From positions 1 to 64,000 of the IMG/VR virus record IMGVR_UViG_3300027573_000779: a stretch of DNA of 64,000 nt; one strand, 5' to 3'. A model generated the notes under the pieces. That model ran no database searches, was not told where the DNA came from, and worked only from the letters and a program-made list of their open reading frames with translations. Below, piece after piece: positions 2,905-18,570 of this stretch; the first letter of the stretch is position 1, and each line of letters starts with the position of its first letter. The position numbers were made by a program, and so were the translations under genes.

Positions 2905-2981
2905 TGGTACTCCCGTTGGGACTTGCACCCAAATTTGTCTACTTAGAAGGTAGATGCCTCATCTATTTCGGCCACAGGAGC
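2905..2981 (-). tRNA. tRNA-Arg(UCU) with non-canonical elbow (A18, G55)
   Basis: GCTCCTG/CGGGAGT acceptor, TCTAC-CTTCTAA-GTAGA anticodon arm, TTGGG-TGCAAGT-CCCAA T arm, encoded CCA, A20. Confidence 0.92.
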
Positions 2982-3003
2982 ATTTTACTGAGGTTGGCAG
3001 TCT

Positions 3004-3951
3004 TTACTCTGATAAAGCACTAATAGTGTGTAAGCCCCTACGATTCGCGAACAAAGACCAATTCATGCCATCGGAAGAGGTTAGTACTTGTAGTGGTGCG
3101 CCCCCTGCGGCCCCATTGCGCCACCATAAAAGATTATTTACCGCACTACTACCCAATGGTTCTCCTCGTAACACAAGCCAATGTGTGCCGACTGGACACG
3201 CAACATTTGGCATAGGGAAAACTGTCTTACTCACAATAGCATTCGATAAACTAAACGTGTCCATATGAGGCATACTTGAGATAGCTACAGCAACAGATTC
3301 ACCAAGCTGAGTAACGGGATTAGTGCCGCCTAACCAAATAGACGCGTAAACCTGTCCCTGTAGACCGCCTACACTTTGAAGCGCCGCTGTGAGTTCACAT
3401 ATAGCGGTGTTGTTAGTCCACACAAAGGGCGTTGCAGCATACTTCCTTGAAGATACATCAAGCCATCGAGTATAACCAAAACCACTATTTGTTGACATGT
3501 TCATTAATACTTCATCACATGTGACTACTGGGGGAGGAGGATTTGTGACGGGTGGAAGGTCATTTGTGTAAATAATAGTGATAGTATCTGTATACTTGGT
3601 GACGCGAAGGTTGGGAGGTTCTTCGGGAAGATTCGGTGGAGGAGGAGGAAGAGGCGTATTATAAACGACTTCGTTACTGAAATCACTCTCCATATTTTCA
3701 TTATTGGCAGCAGTAGCAGTAAAGTAGTAGGTGCGACCAGCAAGAAGGCCGTCAATTGAACCTAAAAGGACATTTCCAACATTAAGTTTGTTGGTATAAA
3801 ACCCGCTAGTGCCACCGGAATATAAATAATACGAAACTACATTCGTGTCAGGGCTAGGGTCCCACGCCAAAGTAACGGTCCCCGCATAGACAGAGAGGTT
3901 AATGAGAACAAGAATTACGATTGTTTTGATGCCGAGTTTGATTTTTTTCAT
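3004..3951 (-). CDS. Secreted FN3-domain protein with Pro-rich linkers and an unknown C-terminal beta domain
   Basis: Signal peptide, VTLAWDPS...YYFTATA...ESDFSNEV FN3 pattern, PPPPPP linker. Confidence 0.8.
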   Translation of the reverse strand: MKKIKLGIKTIVILVLINLSVYAGTVTLAWDPSPDTNVVSYYLYSGGTSGFYTNKLNVGNVLLGSIDGLLAGRTYYFTATAANNENMESDFSNEVVYNTPLPPPPPNLPEEPPNLRVTKYTDTITIIYTNDLPPVTNPPPPVVTCDEVLMNMSTNSGFGYTRWLDVSSRKYAATPFVWTNNTAICELTAALQSVGGLQGQVYASIWLGGTNPVTQLGESVAVAISSMPHMDTFSLSNAIVSKTVFPMPNVACPVGTHWLVLRGEPLGSSAVNNLLWWRNGAAGGAPLQVLTSSDGMNWSLFANRRGLHTISALSE

Positions 3952-4018
3952 TTTTTTAGGTGTGTTAGTGTCTCATTTTGAGGCACAAGTGGAAAAAAAG
4001 ATTTTCATTTCTATCAGT

Positions 4019-4024
4019 TTACAC
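4019..4024 (-). promoter_or_regulatory. GTGTAA motif (putative phage late promoter) upstream of the FN3 gene
   Basis: GTGTAAACTGATAG on minus strand; the same hexamer recurs in intergenic positions at 2859, 19382, 35485, 43847 and 45005. Confidence 0.4.
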
Positions 4025-4054
4025 GAACCTTGGGTTGAATACAAGGAAAAAAGA

Positions 4055-4128
4055 TGGTGGGGCCGCTCGGTAACTCTCCGAGTTCAAAAATTTAAAAGAT
4101 TTTTGCTTCAATTTAAAGCTTCGACCCC
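4055..4128 (-). tRNA. tRNA-Lys(UUU) with fully rewired elbow (A18, U19, A54, G55, A56, U58)
   Basis: GGGGTCG/CGGCCCC acceptor, AAAAT-CTTTTAA-ATTTT anticodon arm, CTCGG-AGAGTTA-CCGAG T arm, ACCA end. Confidence 0.9.
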
Positions 4129-4132
4129 ATAA

Positions 4133-4384
4133 CTAAGTTTTTTTTATTAACCAACCAGTGTTAATAGTGTTGCTTTGAAAGCCGTTCTGCCATTTTACTG
4201 TTGCATATTCTCCATAGAGATAATGGTTGTTTTCTAATCGTAAACCTAATATTTCACCTGTTAGGTTTTTTTGGTGGATTTCTTGGTATTGTTCTTTATT
4301 AATCTGACAGCCATCATATAACTTATGCGCACCCTTGGGTTCTAACTGAACCGTATCTCCTACTTGAAGTCCTGATTTATCCAT
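4133..4384 (-). CDS. Hypothetical protein
   Basis: 83-aa ORF in gene-dense minus-strand array. Confidence 0.6.
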   Translation of the reverse strand: MDKSGLQVGDTVQLEPKGAHKLYDGCQINKEQYQEIHQKNLTGEILGLRLENNHYLYGEYATVKWQNGFQSNTINTGWLIKKT

Positions 4385-4618
4385 GATTTTATTTTGTAAG
4401 CGTAAATTTTAAAAAATTTATTAAAATCAATGGTTCCTCTAGGTTAGATACTCTGTTTAAAAATCTACTTGGCTCTAAGGTTAGTTGGAGGTAACGGTAT
4501 ACTGGGTATGCGAACAGTGGCATACGGACTCTTGCCTTGTAAACGTTATACTCAGCTTCCATTCGTCACTCTTTAAATGATGGGGTTCTAGCCCAACATC
4601 TTTAATAGTTTGAAATTC

Positions 4619-5722
4619 TTAATTCTTCAAAACCTGATACAATAATTTCTTTCTATCTTCTGAATCTAAACCCTTACCGTCCAACAGTTTAAACACAAAA
4701 GAAGCGCGATTTGTATTTCCGTATGCTTTAATAACTTCAAGCGCCTGTTCTTTTCGAGTTGGTAAATGCGCCAAACGACTGGTCACAAAAGTATTCATGC
4801 CTTGAATAATCTTTGCAACCTCTTTTGAACCGTCACAAATCCGCGATGCATCCCCTCTACATTGATTCCATAGCTCCCAATCAAATTGAGAAGTAATATT
4901 AGCTTCAAAGGTTCGATATTCAGGTTCACCTTGCGCAAACCACACATCCACAACTTTATCGAAAGAAGACAAAGCTTCCTTCATTCTGTGCAAGCTCAAA
5001 TACCACAAGGACTTACATTTATGGATTGCTTGACCGTCTTTAGAATAAACACAAACGCCCTCTTTGCCTTTCCATGTCTCGACATCAGTCATTAAAGCTT
5101 CAACTGAAGAAAATTGATAAGTAGAAGGTCGCTTAAATTCTAATGCTTTCGCAACTTCATCGAGTCTTTCCTGAGACCATAAAGTATAATCTAAATGTTC
5201 AACAACTCCAACCAAAATCCAATCGGGCTGTTCACCATAATTTAGAATGATTTTACGAGTAGGGGACACCCATTCAAAGAGCCAAGACTTTTTGCCCCAA
5301 TCTTTAATTGAATTATAAATCAAGTCAATTTTGTATAAAAGGGCTTGTTTAAAAACTTCAATCTCGTGCGCATTTTCTAAATCTTCAACATTTGAAGTGC
5401 CCCGAGTCCGAATGATATGTTTGCCTTTATACTTGGAAACAATCAACAGTGAGCCGTCTACTTTCTCAACGATAGTGGTCTTGTTAAGAGATTTTGGCAC
5501 TGGAAAGTGTTCTAGATTCTCGCCCCAATTCACAAATTTAGGAAAACCTGCCGAAACTAATTCTCCATCGTTATTCCAAAGGCTAGACCGCAATATCTTG
5601 TTATCTTGAGTCCACTTACATCCAATATGTTGGGGTTGGATTAACCACAATTGTTCCCCATCCAAAACATGCTGGTGAATCATGAATTGGGCGCGGTCAA
5701 TTAAATCTAAGTCAATTTTCAA
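4619..5722 (-). CDS. T4 Rnl1-like RNA ligase (nucleotidyltransferase)
   Basis: Motif I EKVDGSL, RTRG, LFEW, EGVCV, KCKS. Confidence 0.82.
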   Translation of the reverse strand: MKIDLDLIDRAQFMIHQHVLDGEQLWLIQPQHIGCKWTQDNKILRSSLWNNDGELVSAGFPKFVNWGENLEHFPVPKSLNKTTIVEKVDGSLLIVSKYKGKHIIRTRGTSNVEDLENAHEIEVFKQALLYKIDLIYNSIKDWGKKSWLFEWVSPTRKIILNYGEQPDWILVGVVEHLDYTLWSQERLDEVAKALEFKRPSTYQFSSVEALMTDVETWKGKEGVCVYSKDGQAIHKCKSLWYLSLHRMKEALSSFDKVVDVWFAQGEPEYRTFEANITSQFDWELWNQCRGDASRICDGSKEVAKIIQGMNTFVTSRLAHLPTRKEQALEVIKAYGNTNRASFVFKLLDGKGLDSEDRKKLLYQVLKN

Positions 5723-5732
5723 TCTGGTTGCT

Positions 5733-5760
5733 ATTATAGCAAGACTTTTTAGAATGTCAA
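5733..5760 (-). promoter_or_regulatory. Sigma70-type promoter TTGACA-N16-TATAAT (extended -10)
   Basis: TTGACAttctaaaaagtcttgcTATAAT upstream of the RNA ligase. Confidence 0.7.
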
Positions 5761-5937
5761 ACGATTGGTCTCCAAAACACTTTTAAAATAGTTTGTTTTT
5801 ACCCCAAGCACCCATTCTTTGTAGTGTTTTTCTATCTCAGGAATTTCCTTAGGGGGACGTTGGGGCCAGCGAGCTTCAAAAGATGGATTTTGAACAAACA
5901 AAAAGGAAATTAACAATCCGGCACCTAAAAAATTCAT
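5749..5937 (-). CDS. Small hypothetical protein with N-terminal hydrophobic segment
   Basis: ORF track; abuts neighbours. Confidence 0.5.
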   Translation of the reverse strand: MNFLGAGLLISFLFVQNPSFEARWPQRPPKEIPEIEKHYKEWVLGVKTNYFKSVLETNRLTF

Positions 5938-6149
5938 AAACAGTCTGATTTAAGATAACCGGCCTCTTCTAGTCTGAGTTTAAGAAAATAAGGCAAACTT
6001 AGACTAAGATACCCATCTTCTTGCATATTATGCCACTCTAAAAGTATTTCATTAATTTTTCTTGTGATTGCGTCCCACGTTTGAGGGTTTTCCATAACTT
6101 TAGTTACACTAAATTCTCCCCTCAATCTCCACGCGGAGCGAGGGGTCAC
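5934..6149 (-). CDS. Hypothetical protein
   Basis: ORF track; 4-nt overlap with next gene. Confidence 0.5.
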   Translation of the reverse strand: MTPRSAWRLRGEFSVTKVMENPQTWDAITRKINEILLEWHNMQEDGYLSLSLPYFLKLRLEEAGYLKSDCL

Positions 6150-6271
6150 GCCACCCGTTCAATTAGAATACATTGACTTTTGGACAAGAACAGATGTCGT
6201 AAATTGGAGACAGAGCCTACAGCTAAGTAGGCAAAACATCTCATGAGAACGTCTCTTCTCTGTCAATGATA

Positions 6272-6742
6272 CTAACTACCTACTCTCTCATTCGTCCCAT
6301 CCCAAACAAACTCTCCATCTTCGCCGACAAGTAGATGTTTGCCACACCCACAACAATAAGTCAGTCCATAGAACTTTGGATTTCTACTATAAGTTTCGGC
6401 TATGGCTTGACCCATATAAGTTATCGCCCCACAGCCTTTGCCTATTTTATTTAACTCTTCCTGTGTCCAGAACTTACCTAGGGCGGCAGTATTCGGCGGA
6501 TACTCCTCATACTTAGCATAACCAAACTCATCATATAACTCATGCTCCTTAGCAGTAAGGTCGCGTAAGGGATACTTCGGGCCAGCGATGCCTACGTGTT
6601 TGTAGCTCGTCCTGACTGGTCGCACGAACCCTTTAGCCTTCTCTTCTTCAGAGAGTACTAAATATACCTCGCACGGAGGAACGGATTGTTTATCTTCTCC
6701 ACCGCGACAAATGCGCGGGTCATTAGGGTCTGTAGTTAGCAT
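6272..6742 (-). CDS. Conserved-type phage hypothetical protein with Cys cluster (putative Zn-binding)
   Basis: HVG...CG...TYCCGCGKHL Cys motifs. Confidence 0.65.
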   Translation of the reverse strand: MLTTDPNDPRICRGGEDKQSVPPCEVYLVLSEEEKAKGFVRPVRTSYKHVGIAGPKYPLRDLTAKEHELYDEFGYAKYEEYPPNTAALGKFWTQEELNKIGKGCGAITYMGQAIAETYSRNPKFYGLTYCCGCGKHLLVGEDGEFVWDGTNERVGS

Positions 6743-6800
6743 AATTTAAAACTTTGTTTTCCTTTATGTATGGATTTTTGTTGCTGTTGGCACCTTTAAA

Positions 6801-6894
6801 TTGCGGCTACTGCATGGAATTCCACCCACGCCGGATGTTACTCACGGTCCAATTTTCAAGACTGGTGCGACAATGTATCATTCGCCTAGTAGCC
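6801..6894 (-). tRNA. tRNA-Ser(UGA)-like gene with aberrant D/T arms and 3' GCAA instead of GCCA
   Basis: GGCTACT/AGTAGCC acceptor, CCAGT-CTTGAAA-ATTGG anticodon arm, long variable arm, G73; T loop TG-GAAT. Confidence 0.7.
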
Positions 6895-6917
6895 AAAAGG
6901 GGTATGAGAAATGGATT

Positions 6918-7607
6918 TTAGACAGACGCTGGAATCAATTGTGACTTTGCTGATTTTTGTCTATAATAAAACTCGCGACGGAATTGCCGTTGTTTTTCCA
7001 TCCACTGCGGGTTGGAGCTTAGTCTATGATACTTAGCATATCTTCTGCATTGTGTTCGGCAAAATCTCTTACGTCTATCAGACGAACTAAATGGCCTCTC
7101 ACACCAATCGCAATGCCGATAATCTGCAACAGCCGTCCGCACAGTCTTTCTTCGCCTTTGAACGTTTGCAACGCGATACAACCGCTTACATTCGTTGCTG
7201 CAAGTTTTCCGCCGATGCCCGCCGCCCGCCGATGAGAACTCAAATATCTCATGACAGATAAGACATTCCCGCATCAAAGTCTTGTGTGGTTTAGCGCGTG
7301 GAAAAGGCTTTACTATTCTCTTTAATGCAGCAGAGTAAAGCGTATTAACCTGCTTCCACTTTTCGGGGTCTCCACCGTTAGCTTCATGATACCGCGTGGC
7401 TAAGACTTTCCATCGCCGCTTAACCAAATCCAGTAAGGTTTGTTCTTCGCCGGTCCAAGCGCCCAAAATATGTCTTACGCCGGGACGATATCGCATCTCA
7501 GCATCGCTAATACCTAAAGCGTGAAGTCTCCAGCGCAGGCCGCGTGCTCGCTGACCACTCCAGTTGCGCTTGGTGGGCGGCGCTTGAGTTATGATTAACT
7601 CAGACAT
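6918..7607 (-). CDS. Degenerate J-domain-like segment plus two CxxC...CxxxC zinc-finger repeats
   Basis: RWKVLATRYHEANGGDPEKWKQVN resembles J-domain helices II-III with HPD changed to HEA; CLICHE/CSNEC and CDWCE/CRTQC. Confidence 0.55.
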   Translation of the reverse strand: MSELIITQAPPTKRNWSGQRARGLRWRLHALGISDAEMRYRPGVRHILGAWTGEEQTLLDLVKRRWKVLATRYHEANGGDPEKWKQVNTLYSAALKRIVKPFPRAKPHKTLMRECLICHEIFEFSSAGGGHRRKTCSNECKRLYRVANVQRRRKTVRTAVADYRHCDWCERPFSSSDRRKRFCRTQCRRYAKYHRLSSNPQWMEKQRQFRREFYYRQKSAKSQLIPASV

Positions 7608-7990
7608 TACTTTCTTTTAAGAGATTCGGCTTCTGCGTGAACTTTTGTATCATTAGAATCAACTAAAAGGGTTGGAGCGTCTTTAAATTTTTTTCGATAG
7701 GCGGCACAGTTTAAAAAACCTTCATATTCTGCTCTAGTACTTCTTTCGTCGTCCCAATAAGGTATTAGTGTCCAATAAGGCTCAAACCCCATATGATACC
7801 AATACATAGGAATAATTTTAAACCAATACCGACGAATACAATACTGGTCGCCTTTTCTAAGGAGTTGAATGTTTGATGTCATTCTTTCACCAATGTAATA
7901 AAACACAGCAATTAAAAACACACTTACAAATACAGTCATTACAACAAAAAACACAAGTAATACGGGTAAAATTTGAATCATTTCGCACAT
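7607..7990 (-). CDS. Hypothetical membrane protein
   Basis: N-terminal TM helix. Confidence 0.55.
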   Translation of the reverse strand: MCEMIQILPVLLVFFVVMTVFVSVFLIAVFYYIGERMTSNIQLLRKGDQYCIRRYWFKIIPMYWYHMGFEPYWTLIPYWDDERSTRAEYEGFLNCAAYRKKFKDAPTLLVDSNDTKVHAEAESLKRK

Positions 7991-8181
7991 CCAAGAACGC
8001 TCGTAGCTTTAGGTAAAAACTTGTCTTGGATAAAATTTAAAATTTCAACGCCCTGCTCCCAAGTTATAGCGCAGGGCTTTCTTGGCACGATTCGGTCAAG
8101 TCCAGTAATTAGCTCCCGCAACTCCTTAACTTCCGCCTGAAGTTGTTCTATCTTCTCGTAAAGGTCATTTGTATCTGTCAT
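7978..8181 (-). CDS. Small hypothetical coiled-coil protein
   Basis: ORF track; heptad-like N-terminus. Confidence 0.5.
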   Translation of the reverse strand: MTDTNDLYEKIEQLQAEVKELRELITGLDRIVPRKPCAITWEQGVEILNFIQDKFLPKATSVLGCAK

Positions 8182-8186
8182 GTTGT

Positions 8187-8411
8187 TTATATAGGATTCA
8201 ACTTCTGCCTAACTTTTTCTTTTTTCTTTTCTTCTTTGTCTAGAGAAAGGAATTTAAACTTTGAATACCTATTTGTAATCAAAGAACCTAAAGTATTATA
8301 AAACTCTTTGGCACACTTTCGAGAACAAAGCCCACGGTTGTCTTCCTGCCCCTTTTTTGTCTGAAATCTTAATGGAACCTTTTTGGTGCAACCTAAATTC
8401 ATGCATTTCAT
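8187..8411 (-). CDS. Small Cys-rich hypothetical protein
   Basis: CMNLGC...CSRKC. Confidence 0.5.
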   Translation of the reverse strand: MKCMNLGCTKKVPLRFQTKKGQEDNRGLCSRKCAKEFYNTLGSLITNRYSKFKFLSLDKEEKKKEKVRQKLNPI

Positions 8412-8418
8412 TAAAAAT

Positions 8419-8496
8419 TGGCGTTCGTGGTCGAACTCTCATCGACTAGGCGTAGGGTGAAAACCTACCTGCTCGAAATACTTTGCATTCACGAAC
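8419..8496 (-). tRNA. tRNA-Glu(UUC) with A18, U19, G55, A56
   Basis: GTTCGTG/CACGAAC acceptor, GTAGG-TTTTCAC-CCTAC anticodon arm, GTCGA-TGAGAGT-TCGAC T arm, GCCA end. Confidence 0.9.
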
Positions 8497-8719
8497 AATA
8501 TGGTTTCGGCTGTCCTAAGACAATGTTGGATTTGGCCGATAGCTCCTGCCATGCCCACAACACCCTAAGCAGTTGAACTTCACGTTCTGTTGGCTTGAGT
8601 TGCTCCAGTGTTGGGGCCGAGATAAACCCTCGTGGTGATTCCTTCTCAGTCACGGCTTCTATGTCTGTCATAAAACTAAACAGAAGACCAGTTTTTTCCC
8701 AATTCAAACATCGCCTCAA
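8489..8719 (-). CDS. Hypothetical protein
   Basis: ORF track; true start probably downstream of the annotated one. Confidence 0.4.
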   Translation of the reverse strand: MRRCLNWEKTGLLFSFMTDIEAVTEKESPRGFISAPTLEQLKPTEREVQLLRVLWAWQELSAKSNIVLGQPKPYCS

Positions 8720-9050
8720 GCTGTTTGGGCGAAATAAGCTTTCGCTTTACTTCTACATAATGATTTGATTTGCTATCTGGATTTGCATAACCAACTTCTC
8801 TTTCAATACCAATAATTGACGCGGTATAAACTCCGTCTGAAGAAGCTCTTTCAATAGCTTTCTCAAGAACGTCACTGCGTTTCTTTTCTACGTATTTATA
8901 AAGAAAATGACAAACGCCTAAATTACCTACAAGTTCAACTCTCCGTTCAATGAAATATTTGTTGTATGTTTTTGCCGCTTCTACAGGTTTAATAAACAAT
9001 CCAATAAACGGAAGTGACGCTAATAGATTGATAAAATTCCTTCTTTTCAT
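8676..9050 (-). CDS. Hypothetical protein with twin-arginine (Tat)-like signal peptide
   Basis: MKRRNFINLLASLPFIGLFIKPVEAA. Confidence 0.6.
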   Translation of the reverse strand: MKRRNFINLLASLPFIGLFIKPVEAAKTYNKYFIERRVELVGNLGVCHFLYKYVEKKRSDVLEKAIERASSDGVYTASIIGIEREVGYANPDSKSNHYVEVKRKLISPKQLEAMFELGKNWSSV

Positions 9051-9061
9051 AAAACAATAGA

Positions 9062-9307
9062 TTAATAATATTGCTGTAAGTATTCCTTCACGGCTTTAAG
9101 CAGCTTTTTTGAAGGCTTATCAATCATTTTTACCTCAATATCAACAAAAGGTTTTAAAAGCTCTGGAATCCTATCTAGTTCGAGCACAGTATCAGAATAG
9201 TCAAGATGCGAAACTGGCACTCCATCTTTGACTAAAACTAGAATTTCGCCAAAATCTTCTAATCCTTCATAATCACAAGTGTTATCAATATATTCAATCG
9301 TTACCAT
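9062..9307 (-). CDS. Hypothetical protein, paralog of 9294-9563 (start revised to MVTIEY)
   Basis: Aligns end to end with the upstream ORF (MVxIEYIxNTxDxxGLExF...KPSKKL). Confidence 0.65.
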   Translation of the reverse strand: MVTIEYIDNTCDYEGLEDFGEILVLVKDGVPVSHLDYSDTVLELDRIPELLKPFVDIEVKMIDKPSKKLLKAVKEYLQQYY

Positions 9308-9563
9308 CGCTATAACCTTCTTTTTTAAGATATTCTTTAATGAGCTTAACCAACTTCTTAGACGGCTTTTCAATCTTGTGAACTTCAACATCGATTCCAA
9401 AGTGCTTTAACACTCTTGGAAGAACATGCATATCAAGCGCATCGTTATTAATAAGATAAAGATGGTCAATGGGTTTGCCACCTTGTATAAAAATGGTAAT
9501 TTCGGGAAATCCCTCTAAACCATCAACATCATAAGTGTTGCCTATGTATTCTATTTTAACCAT
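9294..9563 (-). CDS. Hypothetical protein, paralog of 9062-9307
   Basis: Sequence similarity to neighbour. Confidence 0.65.
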   Translation of the reverse strand: MVKIEYIGNTYDVDGLEGFPEITIFIQGGKPIDHLYLINNDALDMHVLPRVLKHFGIDVEVHKIEKPSKKLVKLIKEYLKKEGYSDGND

Positions 9564-9569
9564 ATGTTT

Positions 9570-9776
9570 TTAAAATTGGTAACCCTTCTCTAGAAACTCA
9601 AAACAAATTAAACACAAATGTTCTTTAGGTGGGTCGGGCTGGCAATCTTTATGAGCAATACCTATCTTTTTTGATTCACAAATTTTTGAACTAGAAACGC
9701 CACAATAAGTCTTTCCGTTTGGTGTAAGCAAATGCCACTTGTCGTTTCCCACAACCTTGTATATTGACATAAACAT
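9570..9776 (-). CDS. Small Cys/His-rich hypothetical protein
   Basis: WH...YCG...C...CLIC. Confidence 0.55.
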   Translation of the reverse strand: MFMSIYKVVGNDKWHLLTPNGKTYCGVSSSKICESKKIGIAHKDCQPDPPKEHLCLICFEFLEKGYQF

Positions 9777-9779
9777 AAC

Positions 9780-9936: not shown

Positions 9937-9942
9937 ACAAAC

Positions 9943-12135
9943 TCACAAGTATTTCGACAAAATCATATCTGTCTCAAATGGAGTCGTTTCAGCCGAAAAA
10001 ACCACGTCTGCCTTCTCTGATTTATTTACCAACTTTCCGCGACCTTCTGCGTGCATAGAAAGCAAATCAAACAGATTGGGTTTAACAAGTTTGCACATTG
10101 CCTTACAAACCAAGCTAGTACTCTTTGAATTTGCGACCGCTGCATTTACAAAGTTTGGATTAGATTTCATTGACAAGTCTAACCATACTACTTGCCGCTC
10201 TTTAACATCAATCAGTAATGGTAGAGCTACCGCTGTATCAGCCGTAATGTCAATTTTGTTTTTGACAGTTCGAGCCTCAAAAATTTCACCTGAATTGGGT
10301 TTTTTGCGACCCATCCAACCCGCAAAACATTCTGGCAAATCATGATAAGGTTGTCCAGTATAGCAACGAACACTCATTACAATATAGCGTCCGTTTTGTT
10401 CCATTACATTACTCATTGGAATGTCAATGAATTCCGCTGCTCCATTAGGGGCATTAGTAATATCCCCACTGTGAGCGCCGCCCATATCCTTGAGATTATA
10501 ATACGCAATATCAGTTATGCGTTCAAAGTCTTCGCCAAGAATGGTGGCTGTTAAATCAATATCTGTTCTGCTTTCTCCGTTTTTCCACCAAACAAAGAAG
10601 CGAATGGTGTCGTAATCCCCATCCAAAGGAATCTTGGAACCTCTTACTAGGGTCTTAAGAGCTTTGGACGCACTACGTTGTGAAAACGGAACCTTATAAT
10701 TCTTTAAAGCATCATCAAGATACACGTTACCCAAAGGCTCTAGTTCCGAAAAGCGAGCTACTAAAACATCTCGTGCTTCTTTCACCACTGAATCACAAAA
10801 AGTCTGATTTAAGGGTATAGGAGCAGTATCCAATACTTTAATTTTGGCCAAGTTCCCCTTAGGGAATACAGCATGAAAATCATTTTGATTGCGTTCTTTG
10901 AAATGAGTAAACACCTGAAGCAAAACAGGAGTAGAAACTTTTGAAGCTACGTCTGAAAAACACCCTAATAGTTTCTTGCGCTCTTTGTCACTAGACGCAA
11001 GCCTAAAGATATGGTCCAGCCTTCGGGCAAAATCTCCCGGTCTAGTCCTAAGAAGTTCTACACTCTCTTTTAAATCTCCTTCTAAAAGAGATTTTTCGAC
11101 TTTTGAGTTGAAAGTGACAATTTTGACGTTATCACGTAATTTTGAAAAAGCAGCGAAAGTTACCGGAAACTGTTTCTTATAGTCGCCGGGATGAAGAACT
11201 TCCCCAAGCCTTATCCAACGTTCATCATATTTAACCATTTCTTCGGCTAAACTTGTTTTGCAGGACTCAAGAAGTCCCAACAAAAACTTCCTTTTTCCTC
11301 TTGGAATTTTGATAAACTTGGTCGTATCCGCAAGTGACACGTCTCCTCCGCACAAAGCGGCAGCTAACCTCAATACATCCGTAGGGGTCTTTACATACTT
11401 CTCTAAGATTTTAGCAGAAGTTGTAAAAGAAATCATCCCACTCGCCACAACCGCAAGTTGTTCTTTGTGGGAAATAGTTTCTGGCAGCAAACGAACGATA
11501 TCGTTTTGATAATACGCAATAAAACTTAAAACAATCTCTTTGTCGGACGCTGAGATAGAAGATTTAGCTTGTACTAAAGAAGTAAAAATGGACTCAAAAT
11601 CATTTATGTCGCCAAGTTCAATAGTGTCAAGTTTAACAGGTTCAGCTAACGGCAACCTTTCTTTCTTCTCGTAAGTGGGAAGCCAAGTATCATCTATTAA
11701 ACCTAAATCCTTGAGCCAAAAAGTCCAGTAATGGCGAATCGCATTAGAGTAAAGCTCAAACTCGCTCATATCCATTACTTGTTGGGGGAAATTTGGATAC
11801 ATTGGCCTGAAAGCCCTATGCGCTCCCCGCATTGTCTTCAGAACAGGAACAACTTCTGCATAAAAATCAGACAGTTGAGACTCAGTCAAGCGACTAAGAG
11901 CCTTAAAAAGAGTTGGACTGATGACATAACCTAGACTTTCAAGGTTCTTATCAATGGTCCCAACAAGCAAATCATTGTCCGAGCTTCTGCCTAATGGGGG
12001 AATAACCTTTAAACGCTTCTCTAGATAGATTTGAGTTACGTTCAAAGATTGCGGCACCTTGGTAACAATCGGCACTTGAGTTTTAGTTATTGCCGCCACT
12101 GGCCGTCTGATTGTTCTTCTAGTCGTTGTTCTCAT
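9943..12135 (-). CDS. Large helical (TROVE/Ro-like) protein with C-terminal TerD-like domain
   Basis: C-terminal IRFFVWWKNGESRTDIDL...HSGDITNAPNGAAEFIDI TerD-like motifs; the N-terminal RPGDFARRLD helical region is Ro-like by recalled family resemblance. Confidence 0.7.
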   Translation of the reverse strand: MRTTTRRTIRRPVAAITKTQVPIVTKVPQSLNVTQIYLEKRLKVIPPLGRSSDNDLLVGTIDKNLESLGYVISPTLFKALSRLTESQLSDFYAEVVPVLKTMRGAHRAFRPMYPNFPQQVMDMSEFELYSNAIRHYWTFWLKDLGLIDDTWLPTYEKKERLPLAEPVKLDTIELGDINDFESIFTSLVQAKSSISASDKEIVLSFIAYYQNDIVRLLPETISHKEQLAVVASGMISFTTSAKILEKYVKTPTDVLRLAAALCGGDVSLADTTKFIKIPRGKRKFLLGLLESCKTSLAEEMVKYDERWIRLGEVLHPGDYKKQFPVTFAAFSKLRDNVKIVTFNSKVEKSLLEGDLKESVELLRTRPGDFARRLDHIFRLASSDKERKKLLGCFSDVASKVSTPVLLQVFTHFKERNQNDFHAVFPKGNLAKIKVLDTAPIPLNQTFCDSVVKEARDVLVARFSELEPLGNVYLDDALKNYKVPFSQRSASKALKTLVRGSKIPLDGDYDTIRFFVWWKNGESRTDIDLTATILGEDFERITDIAYYNLKDMGGAHSGDITNAPNGAAEFIDIPMSNVMEQNGRYIVMSVRCYTGQPYHDLPECFAGWMGRKKPNSGEIFEARTVKNKIDITADTAVALPLLIDVKERQVVWLDLSMKSNPNFVNAAVANSKSTSLVCKAMCKLVKPNLFDLLSMHAEGRGKLVNKSEKADVVFSAETTPFETDMILSKYL

Positions 12136-12151
12136 TTTTTTTATAAAAGTA

Positions 12152-12213
12152 AGCGGAAACCGGTAAAGCTGGATTTTAGGATAAATTTAGAAGGAAGCTC
12201 TACCATAGCCGCT
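12152..12213 (-). ncRNA. Y-RNA-like hairpin, copy 2
   Basis: AGCGG/CCGCT closing stem, GGTAGAGCT/AGCTTTACC inner stem, conserved GAGCTTCCTTCTAAA. Confidence 0.6.
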
Positions 12214-12222
12214 CGATTTAAC

Positions 12223-12291
12223 AAACCGGGAACCACAAAAGCTGGTTTCATTCCAATAGATTTTAGAAGGAAGCTCTTATATAGCCGGTTT
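12223..12291 (-). ncRNA. Y-RNA-like hairpin, copy 1
   Basis: AAACCGG/CCGGTTT closing stem, AAGAGCT/AGCTTTT inner stem, same GAGCTTCCTTCTAAA core with different stem sequence. Confidence 0.6.
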
Positions 12292-12319
12292 GAAATTTCA
12301 AAATTCATCAACTGTCTGT

Positions 12320-12347
12320 ATCATACCAAATCTTTTCGAAAAGTCAA
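12320..12347 (-). promoter_or_regulatory. Sigma70-type promoter TTGACT-N16-TATGAT driving the hairpins and the TROVE-TerD gene
   Basis: TTGACTtttcgaaaagatttggTATGAT. Confidence 0.65.
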
Positions 12348-12357
12348 CAGGAAAAAA

Positions 12358-12444
12358 TGGTCCGAGAAAGGGCGCTCGCATCCCTACGGTATTTCTACAC
12401 CAGTTCCCAAAACTGGCCCGGTACTGTTTACGGTCTACTCTCGG
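12358..12444 (-). tRNA. tRNA-Pro(UGG) with an extra variable arm, A18 and G55
   Basis: CCGAGAG/TTCTCGG acceptor, CCAGT-TTTGGGA-ACTGG anticodon arm, 14-nt variable region with GTA-GAAA-TAC hairpin, T loop TGCGAGC, ACCA. Confidence 0.82.
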
Positions 12445-12466
12445 TTTCAAAAGCACAAAAAATACG

Positions 12467-12775
12467 CTATTTTAAACTCAATAATCTTTTACAACATTCA
12501 TCAATGGGATTAGCAGCTTGGGCTATCTCTGGATGACGTTCAATTAAAATTGCACAACAAAGTTTCCATTCTTCAACATGACTGCCGCCTAACATTTCTA
12601 GTTCTCGAACTATTCCTTCAAACTTAAGACAGTCATTAAGCCAAGCATTACATAAAAGGTCGCAATAATCAATTGAATACCCCGCTTCCTTTACAAGCTC
12701 GAAAATCATATCCAAAGGAAGTCCATGAGTGTCTTTTAGCTGAAAAACACCTTTGAAGAGTAGTTTGTCTTGCAT
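12467..12775 (-). CDS. Stand-alone fragment resembling the alanyl-tRNA synthetase tRNA-recognition helical domain
   Basis: GVFQLKDTHGLPLDMIFELVKEAGYSID matches the AlaRS AFxLYDT(Y/H)GFPxDLTxxIxxExGxxVD motif. Confidence 0.65.
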   Translation of the reverse strand: MQDKLLFKGVFQLKDTHGLPLDMIFELVKEAGYSIDYCDLLCNAWLNDCLKFEGIVRELEMLGGSHVEEWKLCCAILIERHPEIAQAANPIDECCKRLLSLK

Positions 12776-12820
12776 AAAATGGAGTTAAGCGGATAATACC
12801 TTGTAACCCCAAAAAAACCT

Positions 12821-12988
12821 AATCCTAAAAATGAACCGAATCCCGATTCTCCACGGTCATTTTCCGCATCCCTTTCAGGGATAACCCTTTTCGGGCTGCT
12901 ACCAAACGGATGTTTTAATTTAATTAATCGTATCTACTGATGGTTTCGCTATTAATCCCATCTGTATTTAAACTACATTTTTAGGACT
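12821..12988 (-). ncRNA. Unnamed ~168-nt structured RNA immediately 3' of tRNA-Gln
   Basis: 13-bp closing stem AGTCCTAAAAATG/CATTTTTAGGATT; internal hairpins GATGG/CCATC, GCCC-GAAAA-GGGT, ATCCC-TGAAA-GGGAT. Confidence 0.55.
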
Positions 12989-12996: not shown

Positions 12997-13070
12997 TGGC
13001 AGGCACAGTTGGTTACGCTCCAACGCCCCATGGTCCAAAGCCACGTACGCTACTATTACGCCATGTGCCA
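12997..13070 (-). tRNA. tRNA-Gln(UUG) with A18, A54, G55, U58 and a U1.U72 mismatch
   Basis: TGGCACA/TGTGCCT acceptor, CGTGG-CTTTGGA-CCATG anticodon arm, GTTGG-AGCGTAA-CCAAC T arm, GCCA. Confidence 0.9.
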
Positions 13071-15953: not shown

Positions 15954-16045
15954 TGGCACGGAGTACAGGTAACGCTCCTGTATAACGGAATGATTACCGT
16001 ATGAGGGTTTGGAATCCTCTGCCTTACTTGTCGAGCCAACTCCGT
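15954..16045 (-). tRNA. tRNA with Trp anticodon (CCA) on a long-variable-arm (class II) body; A18, A54, G55, U58
   Basis: ACGGAGT/ACTCCGT acceptor, GAGGA-TTCCAAA-CCCTC anticodon arm, ACGG/CCGT variable arm, ACAGG-AGCGTTA-CCTGT T arm, GCCA. Confidence 0.85.
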
Positions 16046-16826: not shown

Positions 16827-16835
16827 AATAGGATA

Positions 16836-17063
16836 TCAAACTTGTTTGTTTAAATTTTTAATAATAGCTCGAACAAGTCTAGGTTCCGCACGAACATATT
16901 GACAAGCCAAACATTCACAGGTCCAATCTTTTTTCTTGTGAAAAGCGTCAATAACATGCATTGTGCCAAGTACGTCTAAACCTACGTTACGAACTTTAGA
17001 TAAAGCTAGTTCTTCTTGTTGTTCTGGTGTCATAAAAAATGGAGCCAAAGATAGGATTTGCAC
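16836..17063 (-). CDS. Hypothetical protein
   Basis: ORF track; CECLAC motif; start may be at the internal MTPEQ. Confidence 0.55.
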   Translation of the reverse strand: MQILSLAPFFMTPEQQEELALSKVRNVGLDVLGTMHVIDAFHKKKDWTCECLACQYVRAEPRLVRAIIKNLNKQV

Positions 17064-17123
17064 CTACAAATGAGAATTCACAAAATTCTTCCTGTTCTAG
17101 TTGAGGCACTTCGGCAATAAAAC

Positions 17124-17199
17124 TGGAACGGTAGACAAGATTCGCACTTGCGTAAAGGTTGGTTGGAAGCCAACTGCCTGACTTCTAGGCTACTACCGC
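17124..17199 (-). tRNA. tRNA-Gly(UCC) with A18 and G55
   Basis: GCGGTAG/CTACCGT acceptor, GTTGG-CTTCCAA-CCAAC anticodon arm, T loop TGCGAAT, U73-CCA. Confidence 0.92.
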
Positions 17200-17215: not shown

Positions 17216-17299
17216 GGGGTCAGGATACCAATCTGCCTTATTTCATTCGACAGTGACCCTCAAGCTTTCTAAAGGGTCTTCCAACCGGAACCCTGACCC
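17216..17299 (-). ncRNA. Three-way-junction RNA, copy A
   Basis: GGGTCAGG/CCTGACCC; GACCC-TTTAGAAAGCTTGA-GGGTC; CTGTC-GAATGAAATAA-GGCAG. Confidence 0.7.
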
Positions 17300-17301
17300 G
17301 A

Positions 17302-17375
17302 AAAGGACATTAACTGTCTTATTTCATTCAACAGCACCCCTCAGTTTCCAAAGGGGTTCGTTACGAATGTCCTTT
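17302..17375 (-). ncRNA. Three-way-junction RNA, copy B
   Basis: AAAGGACAT/ATGTCCTTT; ACCCC-TTTGGAAACTGA-GGGGT; CTGTT-GAATGAAATAA-GACAG. Confidence 0.7.
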
Positions 17376-17499
17376 AAAATTGAAGAGGGGCAACCTAACG
17401 TCATCAGATAACCCCAATCACTAACGTTGCGTTAATGAGAAGTAAATTAAAACAACCTTGGGATTTCACGAGCGTTCCAATGTCTATCCAAGGTTTACT

Positions 17500-18287
17500 A
17501 AGTCTGAGACTACAACTTAGATTACTAGTCTTTCCGAAGATTATCAAGGCTTTGCGAGCCTCTTTCCTCCGTTATCCTCATAAACCCTTTAATGGCATCT
17601 ATGAACCTAGCATGGCTGCATTTTTACAGGTTGCATTTCCTGCTACCCATCACTCTACTCGATGTTCACTTTCTGTCTAGCTTGCGGCCAGTTAAGGATT
17701 ATTAGTCCAACATGCAGCGAAACAATCAACTAAATCACCCCTTGCGAGGGCAATCCAGTCTCCATTACCTTGCGGCAGGAGAATTAAGCCACTTTCGAGT
17801 GACAGAGGAAACGTCTTTGCTTTTTATATCATAGAACGATATGTTGGGATTACACCAACGCATCTAACAGCGACGTGCGTTTCCTGTCGTTTCATATCCT
17901 TTTGGGATACAAAATGCGACACGCCGCTTGCCTTTCATCTTGCAGACTACTCAACCAGATTACTCGACTTTGGATAACTTTTTAAGGGTTATCCATTACC
18001 GTTTAACCTTGCTATTAAGCCCTTGCTTGCATGGCTTGAACTTAATAACTCCTCTTTGTCCTTAGCTGTCGCTGTTTGGCATGATAATATATTAGATTGC
18101 GAGTCTAATACCCCTACTCACCGATTGGCTCTGTAGGTTTAACTATCCAGCTTCCAGTTACCTCACGTTATCGTAAGGTCTCAGGACTGAGTTTGCCTGA
18201 ATATCCCTTTGGAAAGGGCGCGAGGTTAGTTAGCACCTTCGCCTTTCGCCGTCTTGCGACGGGTTATTTAACGTGGTCAGGCCCACA
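17500..18287 (-). ncRNA. GOLLD-like giant ornate ncRNA (~790 nt)
   Basis: ORF-free, many GNRA-capped hairpins (GTC-GCAA-GAC, CCCTC-GCAA-GGGG, CACTC-GAAA-GTG), 5' loop GCCTGA complementary to TCAGGC, 3' GAGTAG...GATAATC...GAAAGACTAG...GTAGTCTCAG as recalled for GOLLD; located within a tRNA cluster. Confidence 0.7.
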
Positions 18288-18305
18288 AAATCTACAAATT
18301 AAAAT

Positions 18306-18410
18306 ACCTAAGTTCAGGTCGCTCAATATACGGTATGACCGATTGAAACAGTTAGCTATGCTGCTCCAAGTTGCCGGAATGACCCGATTTTATGCCCTCA
18401 ACGCTTAGGT
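18306..18410 (-). ncRNA. Closed ~105-nt structured domain directly 3' of tRNA-Leu
   Basis: ACCTAAG/CTTAGGT closing stem, TTCCGG-CAAC-TTGGAG hairpin; starts 3 nt after the CCA. Confidence 0.4.
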
Positions 18411-18413
18411 AAA

Positions 18414-18490
18414 TGGTCCCTCTGGCCGTGGTTGCAACGGCACTGTCAAGCTTTTAAGGCTCGCGTCTCCTGCTCTTGGACTACAGAGGG
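18414..18490 (-). tRNA. tRNA-Leu(UAA) lacking the long variable arm; A18, G55
   Basis: CCCTCTG/CAGAGGG acceptor, CGAGC-CTTAAAA-GCTTG anticodon arm, 5-nt variable loop, GCCGT-TGCAACC-ACGGC T arm, ACCA. Confidence 0.87.
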
Positions 18491-18495
18491 TAAAA

Positions 18496-18570
18496 TGGTG
18501 CGGAAAGGGAGAAGTCGCACTCCCACCTTAAACTTGGCAAGTTCACGTTCTACTACTAAACTACTTCCGC
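18496..18570 (-). tRNA. tRNA-Gly(GCC) with A18, G55, an 8-nt T loop and A73
   Basis: GCGGAAG/TTTCCGC acceptor, TGAAC-TTGCCAA-GTTTA anticodon arm, GGGAG-TGCGACTT-CTCCC T arm. Confidence 0.87.

Follow-up and report, generated by a model that had tools for sequence, protein, structure and literature searches.

[quoted passage not shown] Single changes at G18-U55, G19-C56 or U54-A58 inactivate a yeast suppressor tRNA (PMC4117946). T-loops outside tRNA, in riboswitches, group introns, RNase P and rRNA, follow a UGNRA rule, in which an adenine intercalates between T-loop positions 4 and 5 and hydrogen-bonds to the sugar edge of the G at position 2 (bioRxiv 10.1101/2022.12.26.521914). Mitochondrial and other non-canonical tRNAs can lack G18, G19 and U55 (PMC7609411). 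Phage tRNA islands of the T4, T5 and jumbo-phage type contain clusters of tRNA genes interspersed with small ORFs and HNH homing endonucleases and accompanied by an Rnl1-like RNA ligase, and GOLLD RNA can be found near such islands (bioRxiv 10.1101/2024.12.08.627333). [quoted passage not shown] Phage tRNAs that escape tRNA-targeting defence through sequence changes are established for the anticodon loop (PMC10264068, PMC11555353).

The tRNA island analysed here belongs to a phage of ~209 kb and lies in a 64,000-nucleotide stretch (the window), positions 1 to 64,000 of IMG/VR record IMGVR_UViG_3300027573_000779. As in other phage islands, the tRNA genes match preferred, mostly A-ending codons and are accompanied by small ORFs, HNH genes, an Rnl1-like ligase and GOLLD. 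However, every elongator tRNA found in the about 84 kb of the genome that was scanned has A18/G55 in place of G18/U55, an elbow that seems undescribed in tRNA. In contrast to mitochondrial and other non-canonical tRNAs, the elbow is not degenerate; the D- and T-loops keep normal sizes and three tertiary contacts are kept through paired changes. The tRNAs are spread over about 16 kb among phage genes, roughly 0.7 per kb, and the L-array paper (PMC8421152) uses none of the terms G18, T-loop, consensus or conserved nucleotides.

tRNA genes of the island

An earlier note, made from the sequence alone, reported A18/G55 in nine conventional tRNAs and G55 in a Ser-like one. This observation is confirmed and was understated, since a tenth conventional tRNA, Thr(UGU), had been missed. 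All ten genes lie on the minus strand in intergenic gaps, each with an encoded N-CCA. ARAGORN at default settings found four of the ten and the Rfam tRNA model at its gathering score found five. Rfam alignments place A at 18 and G at 55 for five of the ten, and an independent covariance model (R1), trained only on A18/G55 tRNAs from other viral contigs, places them in the same way for all ten. With filters off, R1 finds exactly these ten in the 64-kb window. The assignment of position 18 in the longer D-loops (Glu, Arg and Leu) rests on alignment and on the pairing of 19 with 56.

tRNA-Arg(UCU) (2905–2981) has the D-loop ..UAGAUG and the T-loop UGCAAGU (A18 G19 / U54 G55 C56 A57 A58) with an encoded ACCA; it was found by ARAGORN, by Rfam (52.3 bits) and by R1 (41.5 bits, E 1.6e-10). 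tRNA-Lys(UUU) (4055–4128), with the D-loop UAAAUUG and the T-loop AGAGUUA (A18 U19 / A54 G55 A56 G57 U58), also has A8 with U14, a swapped 8-14 pair; it was missed by ARAGORN at default settings and by Rfam at gathering score, but forms a cloverleaf of 7/4/5/5 bp and scores 48.1 bits with R1 (E 1.4e-12). tRNA-Glu(UUC) (8419–8496) has the D-loop AAGUAUUUCG and the T-loop UGAGAGU (A18 U19 / U54 G55 A56 G57 A58), with A53-U61 instead of G53-C61 (R1 19.2 bits, E 0.0016). tRNA-Pro(UGG) (12358–12444), with the D-loop ..AACAGUA and the T-loop UGCGAGC (A18 G19 / U54 G55 C56), has a 14-nt variable arm, a weak D stem and A53/G61; it was found by ARAGORN at a relaxed threshold and is the weakest of the ten (R1 16.5 bits, E 0.011). 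tRNA-Gln(UUG) (12997–13070) has the D-loop AAUAGUA and the T-loop AGCGUAA (A18 G19 / A54 G55 C56 G57 U58), a U1/U72 mismatch and G73 (Rfam 44.3 bits; R1 66 bits, E 3e-18).

tRNA-Trp(CCA) (15954–16045), with the D-loop GACAAGUA and the T-loop AGCGUUA (A18 G19 / A54 G55 C56 G57 U58), has a 21-nt variable arm and was found by ARAGORN at a relaxed threshold (R1 21.3 bits, E 3.6e-4). tRNA-Thr(UGU) (17040–17115) has the D-loop AACUAGAA and the T-loop UGCAAAU (A18 G19 / U54 G55 C56 A57 A58; Rfam 43.7 bits, R1 33.9 bits). tRNA-Gly(UCC) (17124–17199), with the D-loop AGAAGUC and the T-loop UGCGAAU (A18 G19 / U54 G55 C56 G57 A58), has U73 and was found by ARAGORN, by Rfam (51.1 bits) and by R1 (53.9 bits). 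tRNA-Leu(UAA) (18414–18490), with the D-loop AAGAGCAGG and the T-loop UGCAACC (A18 G19 / U54 G55 C56 A57 A58), has a short 5-nt variable arm and U53-A61 (found by ARAGORN; R1 41.5 bits, E 1.7e-10). tRNA-Gly(GCC) (18496–18570) has the D-loop AGUAGUA, an 8-nt T-loop, UGCGACUU (A18 G19 / U54 G55 C56 G57 A58), and A73 (found by ARAGORN; Rfam 55.9 bits, R1 62.8 bits).

The paired swaps described in the earlier note, U19-A56 in Lys and Glu and A54-U58 in Lys, Gln and Trp, were as stated. An additional Ser(UGA)-like class-II element (6805–6895, minus strand) is uncertain. It has UGGAA in its T-loop, giving G55 with G56, and a possible A18-C19, but it lacks an encoded CCA, was found by ARAGORN only at a relaxed threshold and was not found by R1; its minimum-energy fold has five arms, with a z-score of only -1.5.

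The ten tRNAs look functional. Their cloverleafs are intact, the acceptor and T stems are complete and every anticodon loop has U33. Discriminator bases fit the anticodons: G73 with the U1/U72 mismatch for Gln, G73 for Trp and Glu, U73 for Gly(UCC) and A73 for Leu, Arg, Lys and Pro. Cognate codons are the phage's most used for Arg, Lys, Glu, Gln, Gly and Leu. Correct charging is not assured, however, given the long variable arms of Pro and Trp, the short one of Leu and A73 in Gly(GCC); Pro, Glu and Trp also score weakly even with R1. The ten tRNAs are only about 54% identical to each other and are not recent copies of one gene.

The earlier note described the elbow as genome-wide, which is too strong. 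Two other assemblies of the same phage, L286 and L287, are 99.98% identical to window positions 145–12848. [quoted passage not shown] As only about 84 kb of the ~209 kb was scanned, canonical elongator tRNAs could also exist elsewhere in the genome.

Other genes and RNAs of the window

The conserved 3′ domain of GOLLD RNA lies inside the island (17501–17929, minus strand), between Leu/Gly(GCC) and Gly(UCC)/Thr (Rfam RF02032, full model, 194.3 bits against a gathering score of 150, E 3e-53). The 484 nt up to 18413 could, by inference, hold its variable 5′ half. No GOLLD was found in the loci of six close relatives.

The island also contains, on the minus strand, a gene for a T4 Rnl1-like RNA ligase of the tRNA repair type (4619–5722; Pfam RNA_lig_T4_1, 1.1e-10; phrog_562, 1e-30; NCBIfam T4 RnlA family, below cutoff) and an HNH endonuclease-like gene (6918–7607; phrog_1271, 6.9e-06; no Pfam hit). 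A second HNH endonuclease gene is next to tRNA-Gly(GCC) (18561–19100, minus strand; Pfam HNH, 0.0029, and eleven PHROG families, nine of them annotated as HNH endonuclease). Further along the minus strand are genes for a SpoU/TrmH-like 2′-O-methyltransferase (27229–27882) and a Thg1-like protein, a 3′–5′ polymerase of the tRNA 5′-end repair type (29862–30608; Pfam Thg1, 1e-27; PDB 4KGK, a Thg1-like protein, E 1.4e-45). The closest characterised relatives of the methyltransferase methylate G18 of tRNA (Pfam SpoU_methylase, 3e-24; the top three PDB hits are Gm18 methyltransferases, E 1e-18), although its best NCBIfam hit, TrmH, reaches 75.8 bits against a cutoff of 227. A 63% identical homologue sits inside a mixed, mostly canonical tRNA array at another locus (L280).

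Distribution of the A18/G55 elbow

The elbow is not unique to this phage. It occurs in at least 120 viral stretches, 120 of 124 matches folding as full cloverleafs, and in at least 106 bacterial genome stretches, 106 of 121 matches folding. The bacterial examples include tRNA-His in Pelagibacter (SAR11) isolates and single-cell genomes, initiator-type tRNA-Met in many CPR bacteria, Thr and Val tRNAs in Alphaproteobacteria and tRNA arrays in Verrucomicrobia that are almost entirely A18/G55. The cultured Pelagibacter phage HTVC008M carries one such tRNA, unannotated in its record. In most other viral contigs the elbow sits beside canonical tRNAs; 74 of 120 loci are mixed.

Positions 18/55, 19/56 and 54/58 covary here and in hundreds of other tRNAs, the 18/55 covariation being strong. 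Among bystander tRNAs with 7-nt D-loops, with the position defined by loop length alone, G18/U55 was counted 137 times, A18/G55 18 times and G/G or A/U only 3 times; in genome loci the counts were 38 for A/G and 35 for G/U. For 19-56 the counts were 146 for G-C, 7 for A-U and 2 for U-A. The loci outside the window were selected for carrying one A18/G55 tRNA, and frequencies outside the relatives of this phage are thus biased; the elbow-agnostic scanner was custom-made.

Relatives of the phage, at 35–45% protein identity, are about 98% canonical, with G55 in 2 of 114 unique tRNAs. At this rate, ten of ten by chance has a probability of about 3e-18, and the complete conversion of the elongator tRNAs found is a true lineage-specific shift. 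Close relatives also carry a Gln(UUG) gene upstream of the same 730-aa gene, with a canonical elbow or with C55.

Possible origins of the conversion

The earlier note inferred selection for a folded but non-self elbow, which could let phage tRNAs evade a host tRNA-attacking defence or let a phage factor tell host from phage tRNA. This interpretation is partly supported: the tRNAs appear to be folded and selected rather than decaying, but the elbow is not shown to be a non-self mark. Its occurrence in bacterial genomes suggests that ordinary bacterial RNase P, EF-Tu and ribosomes can use it. Evasion or discrimination by a phage factor remains possible, though tentative, as the reason for the conversion. 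Either a tRNA-inactivating enzyme of the host or of a competitor would recognise the canonical G18/U55 T-loop, or a phage factor would act on canonical host tRNAs and have to spare the phage's own. It would be consistent with the concerted, lineage-specific change and with the Rnl1-like ligase, the Thg1-like repair enzyme and the TrmH-like enzyme, whose usual target G18 is absent from the phage's own elongator tRNAs; this context is suggestive but not specific. Verrucomicrobia arrays that are almost entirely G55 also carry RtcB, Ro60/TROVE and HNH genes. Escape of phage tRNAs from tRNA-targeting defence through sequence changes is a precedent, but there the changed site is the anticodon loop, whereas here it is the elbow. 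On the other hand, the elbow usually coexists with canonical tRNAs in one phage, this phage keeps a canonical initiator tRNA, the TrmH-like gene also occurs in the mostly canonical array of L280, and no gene shared with other highly converted contigs was found. None of three tRNA-defence papers examined mentions the elbow, the T-loop or an elbow-reading nuclease; where a cut site was stated, it was the anticodon arm or the 3′ tail. The canonical initiator does not point to a rule, since initiator-type tRNAs of CPR bacteria and several viral contigs can also carry A18/G55. A somewhat less likely reading is independence from modification: a UGNRA T-loop with an intercalated adenine would fold stably without pseudouridine 55, Gm18 or m5U54, and phage tRNAs made in bulk would neither depend on host TruB, TrmH or TrmA nor compete for them. 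G55 and A18 remove the TruB and TrmH substrates in all ten, and A54 removes that of TrmA in three (enzyme specificities from PMC7912444); the elbow also occurs in genome-reduced bacteria, SAR11 and CPR. However, the stability is only supposed, the phage itself encodes a TrmH-like enzyme, relatives with similar lifestyles keep canonical elbows and the initiator stays canonical.

History rather than selection is about as doubtful. The A18/G55 state may be nearly neutral once both changes are present, and the phage would have drifted into it or inherited its tRNAs from a mobile array lineage in which the state was already general, the canonical initiator being a later acquisition from the host. 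Whole arrays with this elbow exist in Verrucomicrobia genomes and in viral contigs such as L064 (13 of 15) and L039 (11 of 19), the short-arm Leu most resembles Leu tRNAs of those arrays, and the island holds two HNH genes. Nevertheless, the Gln(UUG) gene upstream of the same gene in close relatives argues for conversion in place, the tRNAs are scattered between phage genes rather than forming one imported block, and drift to ten of ten from a background of about 2% is improbable; the sequences are too diverged to trace any donor (best identities 0.68–0.76). It is very unlikely that the elements are decaying pseudogenes, or tRNA-like elements serving as RNA processing signals between genes or as partners or cargo of GOLLD. 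The failure of five of the ten to reach the Rfam threshold, the four ARAGORN default calls, the odd variable arms of Pro, Trp and Leu, the dispersal of the genes one per intergenic gap and the neighbouring GOLLD, whose cages have been speculated to hold phage tRNAs (bioRxiv 10.1101/2024.12.08.627333), could be seen in this light. The complete acceptor and T stems, encoded CCA, matching discriminators, U33, anticodons for preferred codons, compensatory changes at three tertiary pairs and the presence of the elbow in bacterial genome tRNAs speak against it.

A probable second structural solution for the tRNA elbow

The most probable explanation (about 0.7) is that these are working elongator tRNAs whose elbow uses a second structural solution, already the standard one for T-loops outside tRNA. 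The T-loop reads U/A-G-N-R-A/U and the D-loop supplies an adenine at position 18, as in the UGNRA rule, although A54/U58 in three tRNAs departs from the YGNRA consensus at T-loop positions 1 and 5. The outer face of the elbow would stay a Watson–Crick 19-56 pair, G-C in eight tRNAs, U-A in two and possibly C-G in the Ser-like element, and 54-58 would stay a two-base contact, U/A in seven and A/U in three. Because single changes at these contacts inactivate the yeast suppressor tRNA, the paired state is compensatory. The sequences, their covariation, the wider distribution and the contrast with relatives come directly from the analysis, whereas the three-dimensional contact, the function in translation, including expression and charging, and the loss of modifications are inferred from sequence.

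In this view, the shape read by RNase P and the ribosome would be preserved, while the substrates of the host enzymes that make pseudouridine 55, Gm18 and, in three tRNAs, m5U54 would be gone. The conversion may reflect evasion, independence from host modification or history; a factor acting in trans on positions 18/55 of elongator tRNAs seems more likely than drift. The variant recurs in phage tRNA islands, in horizontally mobile bacterial tRNA arrays and in a few tRNAs in bacterial genome records. What is special here is that one phage lineage converted all of its elongator tRNAs, as far as the genome was scanned, while its relatives did not, and kept a canonical initiator.

tRNA genes of the phage and their elbow

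The window is the first 64 kb of the 208,933-bp viral contig IMGVR_UViG_3300027573_000779, which has near-identical ~209-kb counterparts in at least two other samples. ARAGORN at default settings finds four tRNAs in the window, and Rfam at its gathering score finds five, together with a GOLLD RNA. A relaxed ARAGORN run, a scan for a 7-bp acceptor stem, a T arm and N-CCA, and a cloverleaf parse bring the total to ten conventional tRNA genes: Arg(UCU), Lys(UUU), Glu(UUC), Pro(UGG), Gln(UUG), Trp(CCA), Thr(UGU), Gly(UCC), Leu(UAA) and Gly(GCC). All are located on the minus strand, each in an intergenic gap and each with an encoded CCA. The earlier note listed nine of them and missed Thr(UGU) at 17040-17115. 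A Ser(UGA)-like element at 6805-6895 has a class-II shape but no encoded CCA; its fold is unconvincing (z = -1.5) and it is not found by the dedicated model described below.

The observation made in the earlier note, that these tRNAs carry A18 and G55 in place of the usual nucleotides, is confirmed. Each of the ten has G as the second base of the T-loop and lacks GG in the usual place of the D-loop, where A-G, or A-U in Lys and Glu, is found instead. Rfam alignments put A at 18 and G at 55 in the five tRNAs that Rfam detects. As an independent check, a covariance model (R1) was built from 90 A18/G55 tRNAs taken only from other viral contigs. With all filters off, R1 reports exactly these ten genes in the 64-kb window and nothing else up to E = 1; the E-values run from 3e-18 to 0.011, and the alignments place the A-G of each D-loop on the A18-G19 of the model. 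The other paired changes are as the note stated, with U19 and A56 in Lys and Glu, and A54 and U58 in Lys, Gln and Trp. In addition, tRNA-Lys (4055-4128) has A8 with U14, a swap of the conserved U8-A14 pair and the fourth swapped tertiary pair. Thus, of the elbow nucleotides G18, G19, U54, U55, C56 and A58 of a bacterial-type elongator tRNA (RF00005), the first and the fourth are absent from all ten.

In other respects the genes look functional. The cloverleaf has the expected stems (7-bp acceptor, 3-4-bp D, 5-bp anticodon and 5-bp T), with 7 of 7 acceptor pairs in nine tRNAs and 6 of 7 in Gln, and 5 of 5 T-stem pairs in nine and 4 of 5 in Pro, the D stem of which is weak. All ten have a 7-nt anticodon loop with U33 and a purine at 37. 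The discriminator base fits the amino acid of the anticodon in nine: Gln has the expected U1/U72 mismatch and G73, Trp and Glu have G73, Gly(UCC) has U73, and Leu, Arg, Lys and Pro have A73. In Gly(GCC), however, A73 is found where bacterial tRNA-Gly usually has U73, and the T-loop is 8 nt long. Against the Rfam gathering threshold of 29 bits, five of the ten score 43.7-55.9 bits, while Lys, Glu, Pro, Trp and Leu are not reported even at E up to 10. Glu, Leu and Pro lack G53-C61. Variable arms are unusual for their anticodons in Pro(UGG) (12358-12444; 14 nt), Trp(CCA) (15954-16045; 21 nt with a 4-bp stem) and Leu(UAA) (18414-18490; a short arm of 5 nt); short-arm Leu tRNAs also occur in L014 and L029, two loci of relatives of the phage, and in Verrucomicrobia arrays. 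In 43 ORFs of the window, the cognate codons are the most used synonymous codons for Arg (AGA 37%), Lys, Glu, Gln, Gly and Leu (UUA 36%), which gives support, though only indirect, for a role in translation. The ten tRNAs are only about 54% identical to each other, at most 64%, so recent duplication is rejected as the source of the shared elbow.

The term ‘genome-wide’ used in the earlier note is too strong. Two other assemblies of the same phage, L286 and L287, are 99.98% identical to window 145-12848 and diverge from the first 144 bases of the window at a poly-T tract. They carry there a tRNA-Met(CAU) (L286 12754-12827) with a C1/A72 mismatch, an A11-U24 pair, a GG D-loop and a UUCAAAU T-loop, scoring 63.7 bits in Rfam; it is therefore a canonical initiator-type tRNA. 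Window 1-144 looks like a contig-end junction. No other tRNA appears in the next 10 kb on that side or between 64 and 74.5 kb; these statements leave out the remaining ~125 kb of the genome.

Gene context of the tRNA island

The GOLLD RNA (RF02032) is located inside the tRNA island at 17501-17929 (-), possibly extending to 18413, and is flanked by A18/G55 tRNAs. It scores 194.3 bits over the full model (positions 1-416), above the gathering score of 150 bits; none was found in the loci of six close relatives. Published cryo-EM work shows that GOLLD forms a 14-mer cage, and its authors speculate that the cage could hold phage tRNAs. HNH genes are present at 6918-7607 and 18561-19100; association with homing endonuclease genes is described for mobile tRNA arrays (PMC8421152). 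The island does not, however, reach the published definition of a tRNA array unit, at least 20 tRNA genes at 2 or more per kb (PMC4758250): it has eleven tRNA or tRNA-like genes within about 16 kb (2.9-18.6 kb), or twelve over about 18.7 kb if the initiator of the other assemblies is included. A 102-aa ORF at 12467-12775 (-), between the Pro and Gln tRNAs, has a weak precomputed Pfam hit to the alanyl-tRNA synthetase family (tRNA-synt_2c).

The phage carries a set of genes related to tRNA maintenance, comprising a T4 Rnl1-like RNA ligase (4619-5722), a TrmH-like (G18-type) 2'-O-methyltransferase (27229-27882) and a Thg1-like 3'-5' polymerase (29862-30608), the latter closest to a bacterial TLP structure. 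For the TrmH-like protein, TrmH is the best NCBIfam hit, at 75.8 bits against an equivalog cutoff of 227; the Pfam SpoU family passes, the top three PDB hits are Gm18 methyltransferases, and the aligned motifs look conserved. A nucleotide-metabolism set is located at 19901-21310, 28772-29869, 34218-34739, 35491-36018 and 36833-37417 and includes an adenylosuccinate-synthetase-like protein (469 aa), a long thymidylate-synthase-like protein (365 aa), dCMP deaminase, dUTPase and a dNMP kinase; from sequence similarity alone, these could point to modified DNA bases (a PurZ-type or hydroxymethylase-type pathway). At 40573-43827 and 45560-61022, a ribonucleotide reductase is interrupted by an intein with a LAGLIDADG domain and is followed by about 16 kb of sugar-modification genes, namely epimerases, an aminotransferase, a C-methyltransferase and several glycosyltransferases.

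Comparison with related phages

A megablast search of the tRNA region against cultured phages returned nothing, and a protein search found only distant relatives, at most 37% identical. A 730-aa protein encoded in the island retrieved 34 related loci from large viral contigs, at 34-45% identity. ARAGORN and an elbow-neutral scan find about 200 tRNAs in these loci; nearly all have GG and UUC, and G55 occurs in 2 of 114 unique tRNAs. An elbow-neutral scan of eleven loci, including the eight relatives' loci in which ARAGORN found no tRNA, revealed no hidden A18/G55 tRNAs in those eight.

The tRNA sequences are too diverged to establish orthology, with best identities to relatives of 0.62-0.76, often to other isoacceptors; only the shared upstream position of Gln(UUG) could be used. 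In five close relatives, a Gln(UUG) gene is the nearest tRNA upstream of the 730-aa gene, within about 0.5 to 2.6 kb (1.8-2.6 kb in three of them). The Gln(UUG) of the window lies 860 nt upstream, with Pro in between. In the relatives this gene is canonical, carries C55 or carries U19-A56, which favours conversion in place. The family does show sporadic elbow plasticity: A19-U56 in the loci L010, L013, L028 and L030, U19-A56 in L010 and L013, C19-G56 in L027, C55 with G18 in several tRNAs of L036 and L025, and A54/U58 in L029.

Distribution of the A18/G55 elbow

An IUPAC pattern was written for a class-I tRNA with a 7-nt D-loop ARNAGTA, U33, G53-WGCRW-C61 and an encoded CCA. In the window it finds only Gln, with zero matches expected by chance. 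In IMG/VR it matches at least 120 stretches, and 120 of the 124 matches collected fold into full cloverleafs. In a collection of one genome per GTDB species, 106 of the 121 matches collected, likewise a lower bound, fold. They include tRNA-His(GUG) of many Pelagibacteraceae, including isolate genomes, initiator-type tRNA-Met of many CPR lineages, Thr(GGU) and Val(GAC) of Alphaproteobacteria, Ala(GGC) of CPR bacteria and many tRNAs of Verrucomicrobia. The cultured Pelagibacter phage HTVC008M carries a tRNA-Gly(ACC) with A18/G55 and A54-U58 (L281, the locus of this phage, 1501-1574; KC465899.1 91140-91213) that is not annotated in its GenBank record; tRNA-His in genomes of the family of its host, Pelagibacteraceae, uses the same elbow.

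Among all tRNAs found by the elbow-neutral scan, those with GG in the D-loop have U55 in 583 cases and G55 in 11, whereas those without GG have U55 in 48 and G55 in 136. To avoid circularity, the tRNAs matching the search pattern were dropped and positions 18 and 19 were defined by loop length alone, in 7-nt D-loops. Viral bystanders then show G18/U55 in 137 cases and A18/G55 in 18, with only 3 G/G or A/U; genome bystanders show A/G in 38 and G/U in 35. For positions 19 and 56, viral bystanders have G-C in 146 cases, A-U in 7 and U-A in 2. A third T-loop class, GGCRG with A18, also recurs.

Mixed sets are the norm and full conversion is rare. Of the 120 viral loci, a sample that gives no unbiased frequency of the variant among phage tRNAs, 74 hold both G55 and U55 tRNAs, typically one or two A18/G55 among ten to twenty-five. 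A few are mostly converted, including the viral contigs L064 (13 of 15 G55 tRNAs) and L039 (11 of 19 A18/G55-type tRNAs). L064 also encodes a tmRNA (7094-7530; 100 bits) within the array. L039 encodes a 278-nt bacterial type-A RNase P RNA (2590-2867; 143 bits) inside its tRNA array, in which about 80 model positions after J11/12 are replaced by 12 nt and a further 24-position segment near the 3' end is absent; the larger gap appears to cover much of the specificity domain that reads the tRNA elbow.

Verrucomicrobia loci (L228, L235, L242, L189, L179 and others) hold dense arrays of 10-18 tRNAs in 8 kb that are almost entirely A18/G55 and include the GGCRG class; often only a CAU tRNA is canonical. 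The arrays carry RtcB, Ro60/TROVE, sigma-70 and HNH genes and sit among chromosomal genes. These loci, which may represent either accessory arrays or the main tRNA set, fit the horizontally transferred long tRNA arrays reported for Verrucomicrobia and other phyla; in one studied case (Anabaena), such array tRNAs are aminoacylated in vivo (PMC8421152). That paper was found to use none of the elbow terms looked for. A rule that the initiator stays canonical was considered and rejected, since CPR initiator tRNAs and several viral initiator-type tRNAs carry A18/G55; the canonical CAU tRNAs of the Verrucomicrobia arrays are not clearly initiators.

Structural interpretation

Outside tRNA, T-loops follow UGNRA: an adenine from the partner element intercalates between positions 4 and 5 and bonds the sugar edge of the G at position 2, tRNA being the exception with U at position 2 (bioRxiv 10.1101/2022.12.26.521914). 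The T-loops of the ten tRNAs (UGCAA, UGCGA, UGAGA, AGCGU, AGAGU) have G at position 2 and a purine at position 4; positions 1 and 5 are U/A in seven and A/U in Lys, Gln and Trp, the latter lying outside YGNRA. In the most likely view, A18 with G55 would be this general rule transplanted into tRNA. The 19-56 pair stays Watson–Crick, so the flat outer face on which RNase P and the ribosome stack would be kept (PMC4810234, PMC7912444). Single changes at these tertiary pairs inactivate a yeast suppressor tRNA (PMC4117946), so the paired state is compensatory. The identity of the bases at 18 and 55 in all ten tRNAs and their covariation in other tRNAs are established from the sequences, whereas the geometry of the contact, as well as processing, aminoacylation and use on the ribosome, is inferred.

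Possible causes of the complete conversion

The interpretation of the earlier note, that the paired changes reflect selection for a folded but non-self elbow, is partly supported: the genes look functional, but evasion or insulation has support from context only. A concerted shift of the elongator tRNAs found here, against a family background of about 2%, argues for a factor acting in trans on positions 18/55. The context consists of the Rnl1-like ligase, the Thg1-like repair enzyme and the TrmH-like enzyme, whose closest solved relatives methylate G18, a base that these elongator tRNAs lack. On the other hand, the elbow occurs in tRNAs of bacterial genomes, mixed sets are the norm, and a TrmH-like gene sits inside a mostly canonical array. 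A tblastn search of all window ORFs against the other A18/G55-bearing loci gave no shared gene beyond this enzyme. The defence papers checked do not mention the elbow, and no elbow-reading nuclease appears in them. Independence from host modification (pseudouridine 55, Gm18, m5U54) and inheritance from an already converted mobile array are the other candidates.

A broader reading, not excluded but unlikely on present evidence, is that A18/G55, together with its A54/U58 and G54/G58 relatives, may define a distinct and largely unannotated class of tRNA elbow, carried preferentially by mobile tRNA sets, meaning phage tRNA islands and bacterial L-arrays with RNA-repair genes. Its fixation in whole sets, as in this phage, would then reflect insulation of those tRNAs from a factor that reads positions 18/55 of ordinary tRNAs, such as a defence nuclease, a toxin or a phage-encoded enzyme. 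That would be a second axis of tRNA self/non-self conflict beside the anticodon loop.

Significance

Phage tRNA islands are already known; what differs here is the elbow, for which no description of A18/G55 tRNAs was found in the open literature, although older compilations outside it may mention the variant. It is less singular than the earlier note supposed, but broader in scope. G18, U55 and their partners are taught as invariant, and tRNA finders are tuned to them. When tRNAs depart from these nucleotides, they do so in a coordinated way, A18 with G55, that matches the general T-loop architecture, which gives a simple structural explanation. Such tRNAs are missed by common tools, as the default ARAGORN and Rfam results and the unannotated tRNA of the cultured SAR11 phage illustrate, and phage tRNA repertoires are probably undercounted. 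The elbow could also serve as a starting point for engineered tRNAs that avoid host elbow modification. Whole tRNA sets with this elbow, as in this phage and the Verrucomicrobia arrays, offer a way to learn what TruB, TrmH, TrmA, RNase P and the ribosome really need from the elbow. If complete conversion is driven by a nuclease or a phage factor, it would add an elbow-based layer to phage–host conflict over tRNA.
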